In this document: positions 9,547 to 32,977 of the stretch, in pieces | How the letters are laid out: every line of letters begins with the position of its first letter | Position numbering within the stretch: position 1 is the first letter of the stretch | Sequence record: MH494197.1 | Strand: one strand, 5' to 3' | Length of the DNA stretch: 64,000 bases | The notes under the pieces: generated by a model | What the model was told of the DNA's origin: nothing | Seen by the model: only the letters and a program-made list of their open reading frames with translations | Databases searched by the model: none | Program-made: the position numbers and the translations under genes

Positions 9547-9754
9547 AAAAAGCACCTCATTAATGTTTATATACATTATTTAGAGGTGCTAATAGTTATT
9601 TGGAATTATACAAGCAATACAAGTATACCATAGGAGCAAAATGTTCGGTATCAACTAAGTATATTAACTGGGTGTCATATATACCGTACAAATCTCGAAA
9701 TTTATCTCTGTACAGCAACAATGACTTATTGTTGTGTGGAGTCAACCCAGTACT

Positions 9755-23248: not shown

Positions 23249-23424
23249 AAATCTCTCCTTAGAGTTATTCTATGGTATTTAGTTAATAATAAAGGTAACT
23301 TCAGGATTCATTTCTGAAACTGCATTTCTCTTACTTCTATTCCATAGTACTCTATTGTTATATAATGAAGAATCACAAATTATAAGTAAGCAATTCCTTA
23401 ATCTACTTACAGTACTTTGATTAC

Positions 23425-23706
23425 TTAAATCAGTTTCTGTAACAAAAATACATTATCAGGAACTTCTACAGGAATTGATTTATCAAAGAAGAAAACTACA
23501 ATAGGTCTGTTTGTATGAACTAAATTAATAAAGTCTAAAATACTGTTATAAAATTCAGTTCCTTTGTTTAAACTTAATGGATCTTTGATTCTCTTCAAAT
23601 AGGTCTGAACCAAATTATGATCGCTTTTGATTTGATACTCAAAATATTCTTTGAATAACATTTGTGTTAATTCAGATGTATTGGATATTTTCGTTGTGTT
23701 ACTCAT
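23425..23706 (-). CDS. Hypothetical protein
   Basis: Intact 93-aa ORF. Confidence 0.5.
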   Translation of the reverse strand: MSNTTKISNTSELTQMLFKEYFEYQIKSDHNLVQTYLKRIKDPLSLNKGTEFYNSILDFINLVHTNRPIVVFFFDKSIPVEVPDNVFLLQKLI

Positions 23707-23843
23707 TCACTTCGTTCTCTCGTAACTCAAGAAGTCACTACGTTTACTTCGTAAACTAGTTCCTTCTGAAAATGATAATGTACTTTAAAAGCTTGACGGG
23801 ATTTGTTGAGGACTATTTCATCCCGCAGGAATGAAGGTAATAA

Positions 23844-24352
23844 AAAGAGACAATTAAGTCTCTCTTGACGATGATGGCATCGGATATTATCGAATTGAAT
23901 TTCTCAAATTTTGGACGGATCTTTCCTGTACCAAAATTTAGAGAGCGAAAGCGGGTTGCTCGGTTTCTCTCTATCGCAGTCATATGCAACGGTCGCTGGT
24001 CTTTTCATCAACAGCACTCAGTACTAAACTCTATTCGATCAAAGTAGTACCTGTTCTCAAATTTTGGACGCAACTTTCTTGTAAAATCGCGTCCACAATC
24101 CTTGAACTCCCTTAGCAAATTCGTAAGGTGCGAACCTTATACATCTATCTAGGAACTCTCTGTGTGCTTATTGGAGTTCTTTATACAGCCGTGTCGCCGT
24201 GATTCGTGGTCTTATCTCGTGTTTGTTTGATTGCCAGTACTCTAACAGGTTTCTTTTGCTGTTCGCTACAACGGTAAAGCTCATCTATCCTTTACATTTT
24301 CAAGAGAAGTAGGTTCTCATTATCCATTTTTCAATGTCCGTTGTCATTTTAC
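23844..24352 (-). ncRNA. Candidate large structured non-coding RNA (about 500 nt)
   Basis: No credible ORF; promoter at 24360-24387, terminator-like hairpin at 23844-23866, at least eight local stems; GC visibly above flanking genes. Confidence 0.55.
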
Positions 24353-24359
24353 AATATAC

Positions 24360-24387
24360 ATTATATCACTAGGATGTATTATGTCCC
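24360..24387 (-). promoter_or_regulatory. Sigma70-like promoter GGGACA-N16-TATAAT with extended -10
   Basis: Same architecture at 44536-44563, 49888-49915 and 53398-53425. Confidence 0.6.
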
Positions 24388-24784
24388 GTTACATGTATAC
24401 CTTTTTCAAATCCTTGGAACAACGGTCAAAATTGTGTTGATGAATTCGACATCCTCTTTGATATTGGAGTCTATAGCATCATTCTCGTTTCTTGTTGTGT
24501 TCCTGTATTTGTGTTCAGGGTGATTGTATACCACCTTGACTACATTATTTAGGTCTACAAAAATGACGATTTTTGCGTATAGGAAGCCTGAAGCTTGATG
24601 AGTTTACCATCGTTTTGTAGATTAGTCTTGTGAATTAGTTCTTCAATACCATCTAAATGGCTATAGCTATCCTGTTCTTTGACGAATGTAACAGTTACCA
24701 GTACTGACTTCTCATCTCCAAAGTCAGAGATATTTTTAACAGCACTGATGATTTCTAAGTTTGAAAAATCTAATTCTTTTAGCA

Positions 24785-25140
24785 TTACAAATATTTCCAC
24801 AAAGTTCGATAAGTGATAATTTCTTCTCTGGTAACAGAAACTTCATAGCACTTAACACCATCAGTTTCATTTCTGAATGGTTCTGCTGGTCTATCTTCTG
24901 TTAAACCTCGTTCATACGTACAATGATAATATTTGTTCGTGTTCATGTCAAGAAAAACTAGATCAAATTCTTCTGTCCATCGTCTATGCCCTTTACTTTC
25001 ATTACTAATGATTTTGTACTTAACATCGGGATTGAATGATTCAGTACTGTCATCCCATGTACCATAGTCAGTATATTCATCATCTTCATCTAACTCTGCC
25101 AGATGCCACATTAACTGTGGTAAAAGATTTTAGATTTCAT
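24785..25140 (-). CDS. Hypothetical protein
   Basis: ORF 24785..25111 plus a frameshifted start near 25140. Confidence 0.5.
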
Positions 25141-25202
25141 TTATTTTCTCCAAAAATAGGGACTCGATTTCTCAAGTCCCTATCATAACATATTAATTGT
25201 GA

Positions 25203-25800
25203 TTATTCAATTTCTTTTGTTCTTTTTAGAGCTTTCATATGTCGTCCAAAATCACGAACATGCCATATATGGTCGGTTTCCCATAGTTCTGTACGTAAAC
25301 GGCGTTCTTCCAATTCTTCTGGAGTAGGAATTTTAGATTTCTTCTTATCTTTATTGAAAAAATCATTCATATGTTCTTCCAGTAGATTTCTACCCTTAAC
25401 TTTTTCCGGAATTCATCTACTGATTCAGTTTTATTAGAACGAAGACTGTTACAACGTGAACACATGGTGTTGTAATTTGACTCTAAATCAGGTCCACCCT
25501 TAGATGCTAGTTGGTTATGATCTACTGTCATCAGTACTTCATATAGACCACAAACTGCATAGACATTTAAGTGAGGTTTACCATATACCGGATCAGTGCT
25601 ATGTGAACGCTCAATGCGAACTTCAGTGGCTTCAATACCACACGCAACGCATTTACAATTCTTAACGAATGTAAGTACTTTTGTGGGAAGTATCGGAAAG
25701 TAACACCGTTATATGTATAGCGTTTCATCTGTGTACTTCTTTGATTTAACTCATCAAGAAGTGATAGTTTGGCAACATAGTAGACCTGATATTTTGACAT
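25203..25800 (-). CDS. HNH endonuclease-family protein; frameshifted
   Basis: CKCVACGIE, KPHLNVY, LMTVDH...SKGGPDLESNYNTMCSRCNSLRSN read across frames. Confidence 0.7.
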
Positions 25801-25802
25801 TT

Positions 25803-26117
25803 TTAATCCTCGGATTTAATTTTAACCTTAACATCTTGATTTTGTAAATCACGAATAGTTTTAATTAATGCATCATGTTTTAGTGCACAGTCATTGTACA
25901 TTGCATCCCATTTTACGAGTACTGCAAGAATTTCAGCACCATCATATCCTCTGAACCCGTTTTTATCGACCATGATTTTACTTGGTAGTGGTGTATTTTC
26001 GTCACAACGTTCAAGTAAGATTTCTTGTTCTACAATTGGTTTAGGTTGATACTTAATTTCTTCAGCACAACCACTAATTAATAGAAAAGAAATTGCAAAT
26101 ACTAAAGCGTATTTCAT
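25803..26117 (-). CDS. Outer-membrane spanin (o-spanin, lipoprotein)
   Basis: Lipobox LISG-C; ERCDENTPLP...W..MYNDCALKHDALI; overlaps the upstream i-spanin stop. Confidence 0.75.
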   Translation of the reverse strand: MKYALVFAISFLLISGCAEEIKYQPKPIVEQEILLERCDENTPLPSKIMVDKNGFRGYDGAEILAVLVKWDAMYNDCALKHDALIKTIRDLQNQDVKVKIKSED

Positions 26118-26485
26118 TTGAATTTATTCCTCGCTGCAAGGGAATTCTGTTTAAGTTCATTCAGAAGTTTAACGCCATCTTCATCTAGACATACGTTTTT
26201 GTAAACTTCTCTTTCTACTATAATAGGCACTTGTGTCTCGATAACTTTAGCATTATCTTGCATTATCTTTTGGTTTCTATATAGTTTTTGCATTTTCTTG
26301 CTGCATCTTAGCGAGTGCAGAATCAACTTTCTTTTCTATTTTTGGTCAATACTTTCTTTATAACCAGTATAATAAGTATTTGCTGACCATCCACCGTAAA
26401 CACAACCTGCCATTACTCCTACTACCAAAATTGGTTTCCAATATGGTATTAAAACTTTTGAAACAATAATTTCTAGTACACTCAT
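26114..26485 (-). CDS. Inner-membrane spanin (i-spanin); frameshifted
   Basis: N-terminal TM segment, coiled coil, IVEREVYKNVCLDEDGVKLLN; TAAATA upstream at 26513. Confidence 0.7.
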
Positions 26486-26525
26486 AATAACATCTCCTAT
26501 AGTTGGTAATATTATTTAGAGTGTA

Positions 26526-26954
26526 CTATATTATATGTTTACAACATTTTTGAATATGATCTACGAGTTTATACAGTTTAGTGTTTTCATTCTCGTATTC
26601 CAAATCAACTTCAACTTTGAATTCTTCTTCAAGTTCCATGATCATTTCAATCCAGTCAAGCCAATCGAATTTAAATTTTTCCACGACTTCACATTTAGTA
26701 AGATGGAAGTTCATTGATACATCTTTTTCGGATGCATTTTTGTCGCGACTTGTAATGAATTTGACAATTGCTTTTTCAACGTCAGTTAGTTCACGTGTGC
26801 GATATTCTGGTTCAAGATACCATTCGCCATTATTGATAGCTTCCAACGAAAGTCTAAGTTCATGCATTAGTTTATAACGATCAGTACTTTTATGGATGCG
26901 GTTAACTTCGCGATTCAGTACACGTAGTGCGTCTTTGATTTGTTCGTTTAGCAT
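26526..26954 (-). CDS. Protein with a C-terminal acyl-carrier-protein-like domain lacking the phosphopantetheine Ser
   Basis: FDWLDWIEMIMELEEEFKVEVD...LVDHIQ versus E. coli ACP [22 protein letters not shown]...AIDYIN; own SD GAGGA before MLNEQ. Confidence 0.65.
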   Translation of the reverse strand: MLNEQIKDALRVLNREVNRIHKSTDRYKLMHELRLSLEAINNGEWYLEPEYRTRELTDVEKAIVKFITSRDKNASEKDVSMNFHLTKCEVVEKFKFDWLDWIEMIMELEEEFKVEVDLEYENENTKLYKLVDHIQKCCKHII

Positions 26955-26964
26955 AACAATCCTC

Positions 26965-28198
26965 TTATTTTTTCTGTACCATTGCATTTCACGGATATCT
27001 AATAGTACCTTCGTAGCCAACTTTATGTTTGGTCGCTTCGGTAGATGGGTCTTATGATACGCCACATTTCGGATGTAGTCAACCTTTTCGTTGAAATAAT
27101 CCATAACTTCTTGATACAACCACTTCCCGTTACGAATGTCCATCAACATAGCAGCATCCGGTCGGTGAACTTGGATGATGCCAGTTTCAAGTGCTTCCTG
27201 TGCTGTATTCAGCAGCCTGATTGTATGCATAGCATGTTTGCAGTCATAACCGTGGTGTGATTCAAGAATAGCACGTTTGGCATTACGATTCTGCTTCCAT
27301 TTGTGATAACTCTTACGGTTCTCACTATTTTCTTTGTATTCCTTTTCATTGAATTTTACAATGAGTTCAGGACGAACTTTCAATTCTTCTGTAGTACGTT
27401 CTTTGTTGAAGTAACGTAGTGAACCATCAGCATTCACTGTACTTTCATTCGGGTTGATAATTACCCCAAAGATGTTTTCACCGTAATGGATTAGTTCATA
27501 TCCAGAATTGTAATTCAATAAATTGAAATCACGATCTAATACTTTATCAGTACTATAATTATGTACTAAACGTACAAAATGATATTGTTTCAATGCTTGT
27601 GTTGAAACTAATTGTAATGAAGTATCACGCATGTATTTTTCAAAATCAATTTTTGTAGCATTGAATGGGTGAAGATTGGATTTATTCAAACGGTCAACCA
27701 AATACTGCGGGAATGTATCATACATCCATGAAAGTACTTCGTCAACTGGATGTTCTTCTAAAATTTCATTTAGTTTACGTTCAGCAATTCGTTCCTTATC
27801 GAGCCAGCCGTGGTGATTAGACATACGCTTAACCTGATTGTATGCATATCCACTGTATGAGTGTGCAATCTTTGAACTCAATAATTGCTGATTGAATGAG
27901 CGTAGATAGTCATAGATTTCAGTACTTTCTACGATGTGTTCCGGTTTAACCCATAGTGATTCAAGAATGTTTGGGTTAGCTTCAGTATACAGACTTAAGT
28001 ACTGATTGATTTCATAAAATTTAGTATCTTCTTCAGAAGTATCTGAAACTTCCTTAACATTAAAAAAGGAGTTAGGATATATTCTTTGTTTGCAAGGAAG
28101 ATACCACGATAATCTGTATCACTTTCTGGTGTGCTTGTATACGCCTGTGAACCAGCTAAGTGTTTCACAATAGTTTGTTCTAGAAAATTGTTTTTCAT
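26965..28198 (-). CDS. Pol-beta-superfamily nucleotidyltransferase (RlaP/Nuc-transf type); frameshifted
   Basis: LAGSQAY.TSTPESDTDYRGIF, NPNILESLW, SYSGYAYNQ, GYDCKHAMHTIRLL. Confidence 0.85.
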
Positions 28199-29953
28199 AA
28201 GTAAATCGTTAACTCCTTTAGAAAACCATTATAGTATCGTTTAAAATCATGATCCAGTACTTGATAGTCATTGTAACTAAATCCAAGATTGATGATGGTA
28301 TCTTCTTGGAAGAATTTCTCTTCATTCATTACTTCGATGGGTTCGTATTCTTTCCCACCTTTATATACTTTAGTAAAGAACATACCATCATTGTTAATTT
28401 CAACGTACATGAAATTATTTTCTGGATCTCGTGGACACACAATGTTTAGTGAACTTGTCCCATTGTTATTATATTCGTATGAAATAATATCAAAAGAATC
28501 GATACCATAACATTTGGACTTTTCTTTGTCACCAAAGACTTTTCTATCTGTACTCATATTGCGTATAGTACTGTAGATATCATCGATTGTAGTCATAATT
28601 AACCACCGTACTTTGACTTATATGTTTCTAAAGATAAAGAAATGCGATTTTGCTTTTAATTCTTTCATCAATATCCTTTGAATTCTTAACACTTCTGTAT
28701 ACATCAGCTAATAAATTATAATCTTCTTTATTTGAGCTATGTAATGCCCAACCTATATCTGTTTTGATTCGAACATATGCTTTATTTGATGTGAAATAAA
28801 AATTGAATCCGTTAGACCCATCAAAAATATCATAAGTATTTACCCAATCTCCATAAGGAAAACTCATTGGTACTGACTCATAATCAATGGTGATATCCGA
28901 TAAATTTTAGAACAGTACTTTACAAAGTGGTAAACAATCGGATCACATTTTGATAATTCGTATTTGTATTCAATGATAGTTTTTCTATTAGTATCATTGA
29001 TGGCATATTCTTTTATCAATGGACTTTTTGATGATAAGAGTCCATAGAAACGATTCTAATCCAGTTTCATCAACTTTTTCTTTCTTTTGAAAAATGAAAT
29101 CATTTATATAAACCCTTAATTTTTGTCTATTATGTATATCATTTTGCTGAATTTTCAAATTAGTAAGATTGTGTCTTACACCTTCAACGCCACGCATTAT
29201 TTGTAACATAATTAGTGATTCGTCATATGTTAGAACATTGCTATTATTATCGATATATACTTTCACTCCACTTTCAAGATAATCATTTTCTTTGGAGTTA
29301 AAGTTTCTAATAGCAAACTTAACGCCATTTGTTGCATCACTGAATACATATCGTTCCGCACCGTAGAATGTTTTTCCACGAAATAAACCGCCTTCTTCAA
29401 ACTTCCAACGACTGGATTCATAATCATTAACGTAATCAATGATTAATGGTAGCAAAGGGTGTTTGCTCAATTTATATTTTGCTTCTAACAGAACACGACG
29501 ATCTTGATCTGTATTGATGATATCTTTAAGTGTGAAACTTTTGATATAATTTTAAAGATAATTTCATGCCAAATTAAAGTACTGTTTTGTTTTCCAACTG
29601 GGCCAAAAACATATTCATTCCTCATTAGTATAAATCAGTAATGTCTTTGTATGCATTAATCTGTTTTGTTGTAATGAAAGTTCATTGAGTTTAGTTACCA
29701 TTTTATCTACACCAACACGTATATAGAAAATAATAAATGAATCTAACTTGCCTAGAGTAATTCTTGAACTGTAAGTTGAAAGTTTTCTTGCATAAACATA
29801 AATTTCTTCTTCACTTGGTAAACGTTTCTCAATCAGCAAGTTTTCCACACCATTCGGCTCATAATCAATTTCGAACTCTACGCCTATCACAGTATCTTGA
29901 ATGATATCAGTATATGAACCACCGAAAAATACTCTCTTGGTTTGGCTCTCCAA
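28195..29953 (-). CDS. Run of hypothetical proteins (28195..28596, 28628..~28990, 28994..~29570, 29615..30189)
   Basis: Contiguous minus-strand ORFs, several frameshifted; no recognisable motifs. Confidence 0.45.
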
Positions 29954-30257
29954 CGAGGACTAAATGGGTCAGATGCGTATTCTTTAACAAATTTGTAAAA
30001 GGACATTTTACTGAGCATATATTTCATCTCAATTAGTGCTTTGCGGTCATCATCAGTTTTAAACTCTGCTTTGAGCGATGGACTTTTACACAGTAACTTA
30101 ACTAAATTGTTGTACATCTTTAATGTACGTTGGTCTTTCATTTCTTGGATTTTGTGACGCTTTGGTGGTGGTAGTAAAGATTTGACCATAATTTCCTCCT
30201 GTATTTTCTAGCATTATACACATAAAGAAAAGCCCGTCAATAGACGAGCTTAAAATT

Positions 30258-32977
30258 TTAATGCCAACGTGTACCAGAGCTTGAAGGAACACCAGAACTT
30301 GCAGGGATAGCAGAACCACGCTTGGTTGTACTAGGTCTGTATGTCAAGAATCGTGTTACCTTTTCCGTATCAATTGACGTGATACTCGTACTTCCAGTAA
30401 CAATATCACCAACGTATACGTTTGTCAATGTCTCATCAAGAAGAGTTGTACTGATAACGTATGCCGCTTTTCTTGTGTTACGGTTCATTTGAATGTAAAG
30501 ATAAAAAGTACTGTTAGCTGGGTTAGTTTTAATAGTACTTAATTCTATGGTTTGAATCGCTAATCTATCAAACATACCACCAAGGAATACCGGAACTTCA
30601 CGGGTGAAGTACACCGTGAAACCTTCAGCAACATCTTGTGAAACTACTACGATTTTATCTTGTACAGTTCCTGAACCATCAATCAACCCATCCATCTGTG
30701 CTGATGTTGTCCCAAAGAGACTAAACACTGCTTTAGTTTGATAATCTGAATCTTGAAGATGATAGTATCCAAATCCAACACCGGTATAACTCCGTGCTGG
30801 AATGCATTGCCATTATCTATGTAGCTGGATGACATAAATCGGTTAGATGTAATCAAACCATTCACTGTTTTAGCAATCATCAATTTGAATTGAGCATTAC
30901 GGTTGTGAAAACTGATGAACTGCATCAACCCCAATATAACCAAATCCAGAATACTTTGCAACAGTTAGACCAGTACAGCGTTTCATATAGGCTTCAGTTA
31001 CAATACCTGTTACAGAATTAAGTGTTTCGTATCTAGAACTCACCATAGTCGCAGAACTAATATTGGTTCCTGAAATGGTAACATCAACTTCAGAATATAT
31101 TGCATAACCTTGGTTATTGCCTAAGTTATATGCAGAAACCACCGCAATAGATTTTGAGAAAGAACTATCTGGTACATAATATAAAGCAATTTTACCAGTA
31201 AATGCTCCTACTATTCCAATATTAGCAAGTATTTCTTGTTTTAATGTTTCCAGAACATTATCACCAATTGTATAAGAACCATCAAATTCTAAAGTATCTG
31301 GGTTAAACAAACCACCACTTGTTTTGTATACACCTTCAATGAATGATGTCCCATAGCATTTAACTGAACCGTCAGTGTCAATTAATGAAATCATACCTGT
31401 ATATTTGTAGTTGTCGCCGAGGCGAATTCGGTTGGCTTGTGGTGCAAAACCATTAAGTGTTGTATTGTTTTGTACTGAATTGAACTGGAAGGTTGGTTCA
31501 GTACCAATTTCAGAAAATACTGTATTGTTATAGCCATATGACTCATCTTCATATGTTCCAGAACATGCTAACAGTACTTTACGTTTATCAATAAAACGTG
31601 TTCCTAAAAGGTTTTCACCTACTGCACTACCATATGTTGGTGCAACGTTTACAAATTTGGAATTGTTCGCTTTACGAGTACTGGCAACCCAACTATCATA
31701 TGGTGTTCCTGTTACGTTATAAACCTGAATACCATAGGTTTCAGATGAACTCCAACGAGCACGTGTGCTGAATACTAAACCGTCATAGGTTTGGCATATA
31801 GAACCAACGTTACCTAATTGTGGAACACCTAACTGTGTACCCATGAAGTTATTCATCTCAATGGCAAATGGGTTTGTTAATGTGAATCCATCAACATCAT
31901 TATATTCCGCTGCTATTGGTGCTCTACTACTTCCATCAATTGATAATGATTTAGAGTTGATAGTATAAACAAAACTAAAACCACTAGCATAAACAGTACT
32001 AATATATAGATTTGATACTAAACGGTTAGTTGGGAATAATGTAATTCTAATCTTTGATAAATCTGGACTTACGTTTGCTTGTATATTATAATCTGTATAA
32101 TCTGAATATTCAACTCGTGTAACTGGTGAAGTGCATTCAAATAATGAATCATTACTAGTTCCAACTGAATATAATCTTTCATAAATTTTCAAATTATTAG
32201 CACTTGTGTAGTTAACACTTCTTAAGGTTTGACCAGAAAACCAGTAACCTTAGCAAAAGTACTCATAGTACCATCTTTAATACTACTTGTATTAACAGTA
32301 TATAATGTTAAAGCCAAACCATAGTTTGCTATAGTAGTGTCTTTGCACCACACAAATACTTTATCATTGACGATATGTGCATATAATGGTTTATCTGTAC
32401 CAAATGATGTAGCAGCGATAGAAGCGTGAATATGTGCAACTTCGTTAAATGTACCATTTGTTAAAGTGAAAATATAATTACTTGCACTAGATAGGCTAAC
32501 TAGTAATTCATAACCATTCGTTCCGATAAACTGTTTAACATTTTCAGTACTTGGAAGAATTCTAGGATGATATTTTGATGTAGTACTGATAACACTACTT
32601 TGTGTTAGTGCATCAATATTACGCAAATCACGAATGAATGCATAGTAATATCCTTCAGTACTACCATTTGTACCAGCACGTAATACCACACCAGTACCAT
32701 CATCTTCGACTATTGTTGGTTGCATACGGTATACATCTGAAAGCGACGTTGCCTTCGTATGAACCATTAACGTTTAATGGTAGATAATCCATTTCTATAC
32801 GGGAGATTGGTAACATATCAAGTATTTTTGAACTTCTGATCTTTTATAAATTGGATAGTCAACAATACCTGTATTTGCGTCTGGTGCTGTACCATTAAAA
32901 GTACGCATAGCGTACTTTCCACCAATTGCCAAATTTCCAAGTATAGCAGCACTACCAATGATGCGTTTGGATGACAT
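30258..32977 (-). CDS. Large virion tail or baseplate fibre-like protein A (about 900 aa); multiply frameshifted
   Basis: Pieces 32795..32977, 32222..32767, 30897..32192 and 30258..30728 read as one protein; N-terminal TFNGTAPDANTG motif; paralogous to 33591..36280. Confidence 0.65.

Follow-up and report, generated by a model that had tools for sequence, protein, structure and literature searches.

Acyl carrier proteins (ACPs) are defined by an invariant Ser, and they also act as adaptors in mitochondrial complex I, Nfs1-Isd11, and MukBEF. In the mitochondrial ACP (mACP) of Plasmodium falciparum, the attachment Ser is replaced by Phe, and the protein serves as a protein-binding subunit that needs no prosthetic group, with the Phe being required for binding to Isd11 (PMC8547962). 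Among phages, the ACP genes of Eneladusvirus and Mimasvirus (fHe-Yen9-04 g153, GAP32_159, and CBB_163) have been described previously, with only their position near a spanin gene being remarked on (PMC7760394). RlaP enzymes, which include T4 NrdC.11, extend RNA 3' ends by one or two nucleotides and label only RNA among the macromolecules of Escherichia coli (PMC12776372). In addition, the distribution of RlaP in jumbo phages tracks that of RNA ligases (PMC7824862). No report on the dispensability of the Ser in the phage family described here was found in the literature.

The window is a stretch of 64,000 nucleotides from Escherichia phage CMSTMSU (MH494197), an Asteriusvirus jumbo phage; the record carries the flag UNVERIFIED_ORG. 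As assembled, the locus contains two minus-strand ORFs of 67 aa (positions 27995 to 28198) and 451 aa (positions 26526 to 27881), and the longer one consists of the remainder of a nucleotidyltransferase (NTase) joined to an ACP-like tail. In the relatives, the same region encodes two separate proteins, a 412-aa RlaP/NrdC.11-type NTase and a 138-aa ACP-like protein. Eight relatives with 98.6% to 99.3% identity align over 1,907 bases with 1,901 bases of the window, and the six bases absent from CMSTMSU are distributed over four sites of the locus. The 67-aa ORF is the 5' piece of the NTase gene, and its frame is lost at a T run (28062 to 28067) that is one base short in the alignment to relatives and splits the gene. 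The body of the NTase continues in a second frame (26974 to 28061) and, as assembled, runs on into the ACP-like gene; the intact gene encodes 412 aa in vB_Ec-M-J and ph0011. A 3-base deletion at 28138 to 28139 removes the GGC that in relatives encodes the Gly of AYG, right after the GS motif. At the gene junction (26960 to 26974), the relatives carry an extra T between positions 26974 and 26973 and read TGG TAC AGT AAA AAA TAA (WYSKK-stop), followed by GAGGA and ATG; with this T restored, the NTase stop codon is the TAA at 26965 to 26967, and GAGGA lies at 26960 to 26964. The ACP-like gene, which encodes 138 aa in relatives, then spans 26539 to 26954, all on the minus strand. Its ORF as assembled extends to 26526, with an A run (26547 to 26551) being one base short and the C terminus being altered.

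Over 7.9 kb, CMSTMSU differs from its 99% relative vB_Ec-M-J by 31 internal indels, most of them in A/T runs, and all 31 are one-directional, with bases missing from CMSTMSU and never from vB_Ec-M-J. The i-spanin and HNH genes of CMSTMSU are broken by the same kind of indel. Because the A/T-run deletions are one-directional and the neighboring genes are broken alike, the joining of the NTase to the ACP-like protein and the split in the NTase gene are attributed to assembly, and the sequence comparison indicates that the fusion is an artifact of homopolymer under-calling in CMSTMSU. A genuine fusion protein was ruled out, as a stop codon and a Shine-Dalgarno sequence lie between the genes in all close relatives and the deletions run in one direction. 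The first-pass annotation had treated the ACP-like domain as being in frame with the NTase, which is correct for the assembly as deposited but does not describe a real fusion, since relatives are annotated with two genes. It had also proposed that one extra A in the run at 26968 to 26973 would yield a separate gene led by a Shine-Dalgarno sequence; one added base does restore such a gene, but the base present in the relatives is T and not A. All gene analyses were run on intact orthologues rather than on window genes read through the breaks.

The C-terminal domain of the ORF at 26526 to 27881, reading FDWLDWIEMIMELEEEF, is ACP-like. The 138-aa protein matches E. coli AcpP in a BLASTP analysis (E value of 4e-8, 39% identity over 44 aa), and the family profile matches solved ACPs over residues 58 to 136 (E value of 1.4e-6). 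ACP families of PHROG are also matched (E value of 3.6e-8), and the protein's own family is phrog_18343, whose function is unknown and which covers residues 2 to 138, hairpin included (E value of 3.2e-43; 2.7e-51 for the RaK2 orthologue). The AF2 model (pLDDT of 85.8) has helices at residues 2 to 19 and 25 to 41, followed by the ACP fold, in which helix II starts at residue 98. Among the best 50 Foldseek matches in the PDB, all are ACPs, with TM scores by target of up to 0.78, and fold searches of AFDB and the Atlas gave the same outcome. The phage protein shares with AcpP (PF00550) the four-helix fold and, in an acidic helix II, the pattern D-x-L-D...E...E-E-E-F, but it differs in having Trp in place of the attachment Ser, Trp in place of Thr39, and an extra 55-residue hairpin. 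It also differs in falling below the curated cutoffs, with 13.2 bits against 20.8 for Pfam PF00550 and 25.6 bits against 70.45 for NCBIfam TIGR00517. With profile, pairwise, and fold searches all returning ACPs, the domain (residues 56 to 136; 26547 to 26789) is a genuine ACP-like one, as the first-pass annotation had proposed from sequence likeness.

The part of the protein with no AcpP counterpart is the N-terminal helical hairpin (residues 1 to 55; 26790 to 26954), which was delimited by AF2 secondary structure and conservation and carries a conserved motif comprising L10, E16, S23, R26, and Y27. The hairpin Ser, S23, is near-invariant. No known family was matched by the hairpin in Pfam or in an Atlas search with residues 1 to 57. 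The helix II equivalent, residues 97 to 112 (DWLDWIEMIMELEEEF; 26619 to 26666), was located by entropy and by alignment with AcpP. Of its 16 positions, 11 match E. coli AcpP, with the acidic residues D35, D38, E41, and E47 of AcpP being kept, and in a 13-sequence alignment no other segment of the family is as well conserved (mean entropy of 1.35 bits, against 1.8 to 2.5 bits elsewhere). The ACP part as a whole is acidic, like AcpP, with a net charge of -8 to -18.

Trp98 (codon TGG, 26661 to 26663) occupies the site of the phosphopantetheine-bearing Ser, pairing with Ser36 of E. coli AcpP in the alignment. The same TGG is found in at least six independent genomes (CMSTMSU, vB_Ec-M-J, phAPEC6, 121Q, PBECO4, and Salmonella phage SD-2_S15), which bears out the Trp reported in the first-pass annotation and rules out a sequencing error. 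The change of the attachment Ser to Trp means that the phosphopantetheine arm cannot be carried, as had also been proposed. Both Trp and Ser occur among the relatives, together with other residues. Other Asteriusviruses have Ser (TCA; ph0011, UE-S1, and A4), Asn (JNE01), Arg, or Thr at this site, while RaK2 has Thr and metagenomic relatives have Glu, Asp, or Lys. In a maximum-likelihood tree of 29 sequences, site 98 takes eight residue types (S, W, T, N, R, E, D, and K) through at least nine changes, and Ser-bearing branches are basal to a supported Trp clade. With an entropy of 2.57 bits in the 13-sequence alignment, it is among the most variable sites, and yet it adjoins the invariant D97 and lies near the near-invariant D100. 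The second Trp, Trp101 (codon at 26652 to 26654), is the equivalent of AcpP Thr39 and is invariant in Asteriusvirus and RaK2.

The ACP-like gene evolves under purifying selection, with dN/dS values of 0.17 to 0.42; for two Trp lineages with 28% of their residues differing, the value is 0.18. Its dN/dS is 3 to 5 times that of the NTase gene (0.05 to 0.12), and more than 40 genomes carry an intact ORF. Like the class of Ser-less ACPs, the phage protein therefore lacks the Ser and yet is retained under selection, as judged by dN/dS. The freedom of site 98 to vary, together with its invariant flanks and purifying selection, indicates from sequence evidence that this carrier-fold family functions without phosphopantetheine. 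The replacement of the attachment Ser by a bulky aromatic residue, Trp here and Phe there, recalls the Plasmodium mACP (PMC8547962). Unlike that protein, the phage protein is viral, has an extra N-terminal domain, and varies freely at the site.

The gene order around the ACP-like gene was compared among relatives. The gene lies directly upstream of an i-spanin/o-spanin pair in every lineage examined. In the window, the i-spanin gene (26114 to 26485; phrog_1152 with an E value of 1.2e-27 on the orthologue) is split into two ORFs by indels at 26267, 26284, and 26338, and the o-spanin lipoprotein gene (25803 to 26117) has a LISGC lipobox, both on the minus strand. The o-spanin also shows a weak LysC-like match. 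A conserved CTAAATAAT motif is present in the gap between the ACP-like gene and the spanins, and in Munch and Yen9-04 an annotated or predicted terminator comes after the ACP gene. When the window was scanned for promoters and terminators, there was no excess over shuffled sequences, and the CTAAATAWT motif shows no enrichment there.

Upstream, the arrangement varies. The NTase gene directly adjoins the ACP-like gene in contig L010 and the CMSTMSU clade; in contig L009, the start of the ACP-like gene is overlapped by a truncated NTase ORF. In ph0011, the two genes are 139 bases apart, and the spacer contains a terminator-like hairpin. In 121Q, phAPEC6, A4, and JNE01, a tail-fiber cassette lies between them; a role as a tail-fiber chaperone was ruled out, as the tail fiber is upstream in some lineages only. 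Two phrog_10375 paralogues and one phrog_21561 gene, three genes in all, stand between them in RaK2, Eneladusvirus, Mimasvirus, Munch, and several contigs, so that the common order runs from the NTase through the phrog_10375 pair, phrog_21561, and the ACP-like gene to the spanins. The end of the phrog_21561 gene overlaps the start of the ACP-like gene in the RaK2-like genera other than Asteriusvirus. In contig L013 (237 kb), the NTase gene is followed directly by the spanins, and the ACP-like gene is absent. The linkage of the NTase and ACP-like genes is thus not a constant feature of the relatives.

The phrog_21561 proteins show 55% to 81% identity between lineages and an invariant HxD...H pattern, and their nearest structural look-alikes are 2OG-Fe(II) oxygenases. 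phrog_21561 is consequently regarded as a predicted 2OG-Fe(II) oxygenase, an assignment from structural likeness that is a lead and not proof. No Pfam family was matched by the phrog_10375 and phrog_21561 proteins, and a search found phrog_21561 to be absent from all Escherichia phages. The orthologues in Eneladusvirus, Mimasvirus, and Munch have the canonical DSLD with Ser, and that of the Yersinia phage passes the Pfam PP-binding cutoff. The described ACPs of Eneladusvirus and Mimasvirus share the hairpin motif, length, and spanin adjacency of the ACP-like protein (PMC7760394), but they differ in keeping the DSLD Ser and in the overlap of the gene start with the end of phrog_21561. It is likely that an ancestral true carrier was paired with an oxygenase-like module, that the Ser was lost repeatedly, and that Asteriusvirus lost the module as well. 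A strict link between the loss of the Ser and the loss of the module was ruled out, because RaK2 (Thr), L024 (Asp), and L026 (Asp) keep the module without the Ser.

The NTase belongs to the RlaP type, in agreement with the first-pass annotation. The intact orthologue from vB_Ec-M-J scores 59.8 bits against PF10127 (cutoff of 23; E value of 4.2e-16), a profile that covers only the N-terminal half of the protein, and matches phrog_388 over its full length (E value of 4.8e-75). G16, S17, D28, and D30, which form the GS motif and DxD, are invariant in 28 homologues, and in the window these residues are upstream of the frameshift, although the gene is broken as assembled. The upstream gene's orthologues thus resemble RlaP and T4 NrdC.11 in passing PF10127 and keeping GS and DxD, and they differ in their length of about 412 aa, with extra inserted segments. 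A total of 483 NTase homologues were returned, many of them outside the RaK2-like phages, and PF10127 is present in all but one of the 120 homologues listed; at least two homologues have no adjacent ACP-like gene. A structure model of the NTase has a pLDDT of 90.1, and neither the single NTase sequence nor an NTase profile gave a useful match in sequence searches of the PDB. By family membership, the enzyme would be expected to add nucleotides to damaged RNA 3' ends. A functional coupling of the ACP-like protein to the NTase, including possible joint action, had been suggested at first; it falls away with the fusion being an assembly error, the adjacency not being kept, and RlaP acting on RNA only (PMC12776372). 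With no support for coupling, the NTase is regarded as a syntenic neighbor through inherited gene order and not as a functional partner.

The locus holds two separate genes, and we consider it probable that the ACP-like one encodes a cofactor-independent binding protein built on a degenerate carrier fold, with the NTase as a mere neighbor. The ACP-like protein would descend from a Ser-bearing carrier protein. Asteriusvirus has lost the module, and its attachment Ser has given way to other residues, which in CMSTMSU and most other isolates means Trp. The present protein is most likely a cofactor-independent binding protein, in which the acidic helix II (D97, D100, E103, and E109, flanked by Trp98 and Trp101) and the hairpin would dock on the basic ACP-binding site of a partner. 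Binding through helix II is the mode that we infer, and the partner may be a host ACP client or, as the ancestral pairing suggests, a phage protein. Since site 98 varies, Trp101 may be a better candidate anchor, with residue 98 being unlikely to be a key contact. Several observations speak against this explanation. The gene evolves 3 to 5 times faster than the NTase gene and is absent from contig L013, which makes it dispensable and possibly subject to drift. Residue 98, if it were a key contact, should be conserved, and its variability suggests mere tolerance; in addition, the conservation of helix II is to be expected in any ACP fold and is no specific sign of partner docking. If the protein is such a binding module, it would be the second, independent case, after the apicomplexan mACP, of a carrier reused purely for binding and the first in phages.

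A decoy directed at the host, as in the first-pass annotation, is a plausible but less likely explanation. An unmodifiable look-alike would compete with AcpP for client proteins such as AcpS, PlsB, SpoT, MukB, IscS, or LpxA/D and, acting like toxic apo-ACP, would divert host metabolism or a defense or shut it off. The agreement of helix II with AcpP at 11 of 16 positions, the kept acidic residues, and the acidity of the ACP part are all consistent with this idea, and the fast evolution of the gene is what a gene for host interaction would show. A tblastn search of the RaK2-like phages returned no AcpS-like gene, which is also compatible with it, and the AcpS of the host would find no Ser to modify in the Trp protein. 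Apo-ACP inhibits growth via glycerol-3-phosphate acyltransferase (Keating et al. 1995, cited in PMC4736557), and this toxicity makes a decoy plausible. However, helix II of the RaK2 orthologue is much less AcpP-like, and the invariant Trp101 and the conserved hairpin, which lack an AcpP counterpart, suggest a specificity of its own; other genera pair the orthologue with the phage oxygenase-like gene, pointing to a phage partner ancestrally. A specific form of mimicry is rather doubtful, in which the cofactor-free protein would dock through its AcpP-like helix II on host clients such as AcpS, PlsB, SpoT, MukB, or IscS, so as to block or reprogram lipid, stringent-response, or chromosome functions of the host, and in which the changes at residue 98 would reflect an arms race at that interface. 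Were the partner a host ACP client, the protein would stand for a new way of taking over the host and could serve as a natural probe of the interfaces between ACP and its clients.

The adaptor roles of ACP and the Plasmodium mACP precedent (PMC8547962) would also suit a small acidic adaptor serving as a structural or assembly subunit of a phage complex, possibly virion borne, and late or structural genes encoded on the same strand surround the gene. LC-MS/MS found the 15.6-kDa Eneladusvirus orthologue in three preparations of purified phage (counts of 3 to 5 and 8 to 15; PMC7760394), but these low figures could reflect lysate carry-over. In phAPEC6, the ACP-like protein is not among the 62 virion proteins, whereas the neighbors gp314c and gp315c are (PMC7247149), and we regard a structural role as unlikely. 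The absence of the phrog_21561 module from Asteriusvirus could instead mean that the gene is a decaying remnant, which lost its partner module and then its Ser and is drifting toward loss of function. Its absence from contig L013 and a dN/dS that exceeds that of its neighbors would fit such decay. Decay is nevertheless quite improbable, given that dN/dS stays well below 1 even between the divergent Trp lineages, that more than 40 genomes keep the ORF intact, that conservation is strong in both helix II and the N-terminal motif, and that the Ser was also lost where the module is kept. A lysis-associated factor working with the downstream spanins is highly improbable. The constant position upstream of the spanin pair, kept even with differing upstream neighbors and remarked on earlier (PMC7760394), speaks for such a factor, but the CTAAATAAT motif between the genes and the terminators in Munch and Yen9-04 suggest separate transcription, and L013 has the spanins without the ACP-like gene. 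Lipoprotein acylation is also not known to use acyl-ACP.

Databases name the products of these genes ACP or D-alanyl carrier protein or list them as hypothetical, and a PF00550 note appears in the records of GAP32 and CBB. The names "acyl carrier protein" and "D-alanyl carrier protein" are misleading on these phage genes. In addition, the CMSTMSU record is full of homopolymer deletions, which lead to false fusions and pseudogenes.

In the Cronobacter phage GAP32, the annotated 84-aa ACP GAP32_159 (L021:3060-3464) begins at an internal Met. Because the N-terminal hairpin motif of the family runs on in frame upstream of this Met, the real gene probably encodes about 135 aa. The turn of the hairpin carries, inside the motif K-S-T-D-R-Y, a near-invariant Ser at residue 23 of the ACP-like protein (window about 26886-26888), a position that every member fills with Ser, Thr, or Cys and that could serve for modification or for contact. 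In RaK2, Eneladusvirus, Mimasvirus, and Munch, the ACP-like gene overlaps at its start with phrog_21561 (L004:4015-4578, L016:3912-4481, L021:2501-3076, and others), which encodes proteins of 185 to 194 aa with identities of 55 to 81% across lineages. An HxD...H pattern is invariant in these proteins, their look-alikes are 2OG-Fe(II) oxygenase-like, and the gene is missing from all Asteriusvirus genomes. The pairing of a carrier protein with this predicted oxygenase hints at a tailoring reaction of unknown kind.

The nucleotidyltransferases (NTases) of the related phages ph0011 (L003) and phAPEC6 (L007) are 96% identical, whereas their ACP-like proteins share only 70% identity, which indicates mosaicism by recombination on a scale of a few hundred bases. 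In 121Q-type, A4, and JNE01 phages, a tail-fiber cassette lies between the NTase and ACP-like genes (L007:2507-5925, L006:3011-6425, and L005:1585-4933); it is missing from the CMSTMSU clade and ph0011. Virions of phAPEC6 were found to contain the cassette products gp314c and gp315c. The slot between the NTase and ACP-like genes looks like an exchange hot spot for host-range genes.

The spanin pair lies directly 3' of the ACP-like gene in the window and comprises an i-spanin gene (26114-26485), which three indels split into two ORFs, and an o-spanin gene (25803-26117) encoding 104 aa with an LISGC lipobox. The motif CTCTAAATAAT precedes the start of the i-spanin gene by about 25 nt (window 26511-26521) and also occurs at 9575-9585; it is conserved from Asteriusvirus to RaK2 (alignment A9) and is similar to the late promoter of T4, TATAAATA. 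The window has four matches to CTAAATAWT, each of them on the coding strand, and their number shows no excess over chance. At 25203-25800, where relatives have a single 612-nt HNH endonuclease gene, the window holds a broken gene that is read as a series of short ORFs, with indels at 25222, 25407, and 25678.

Across 7.9 kb (window 23400-31300), CMSTMSU shows 31 deletions relative to vB_Ec-M-J, all in the same direction and the majority in A/T homopolymers; many of the apparent pseudogenes and fusions in the CMSTMSU record are therefore likely artifacts. Upstream of the NTase operon are three tandem paralogs of 169 to 188 aa (phrog_7868 and phrog_18641; window 28600-30200 and L001:5206-6806). 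One such paralog is annotated as a major capsid protein in ph0011, a label that looks doubtful.
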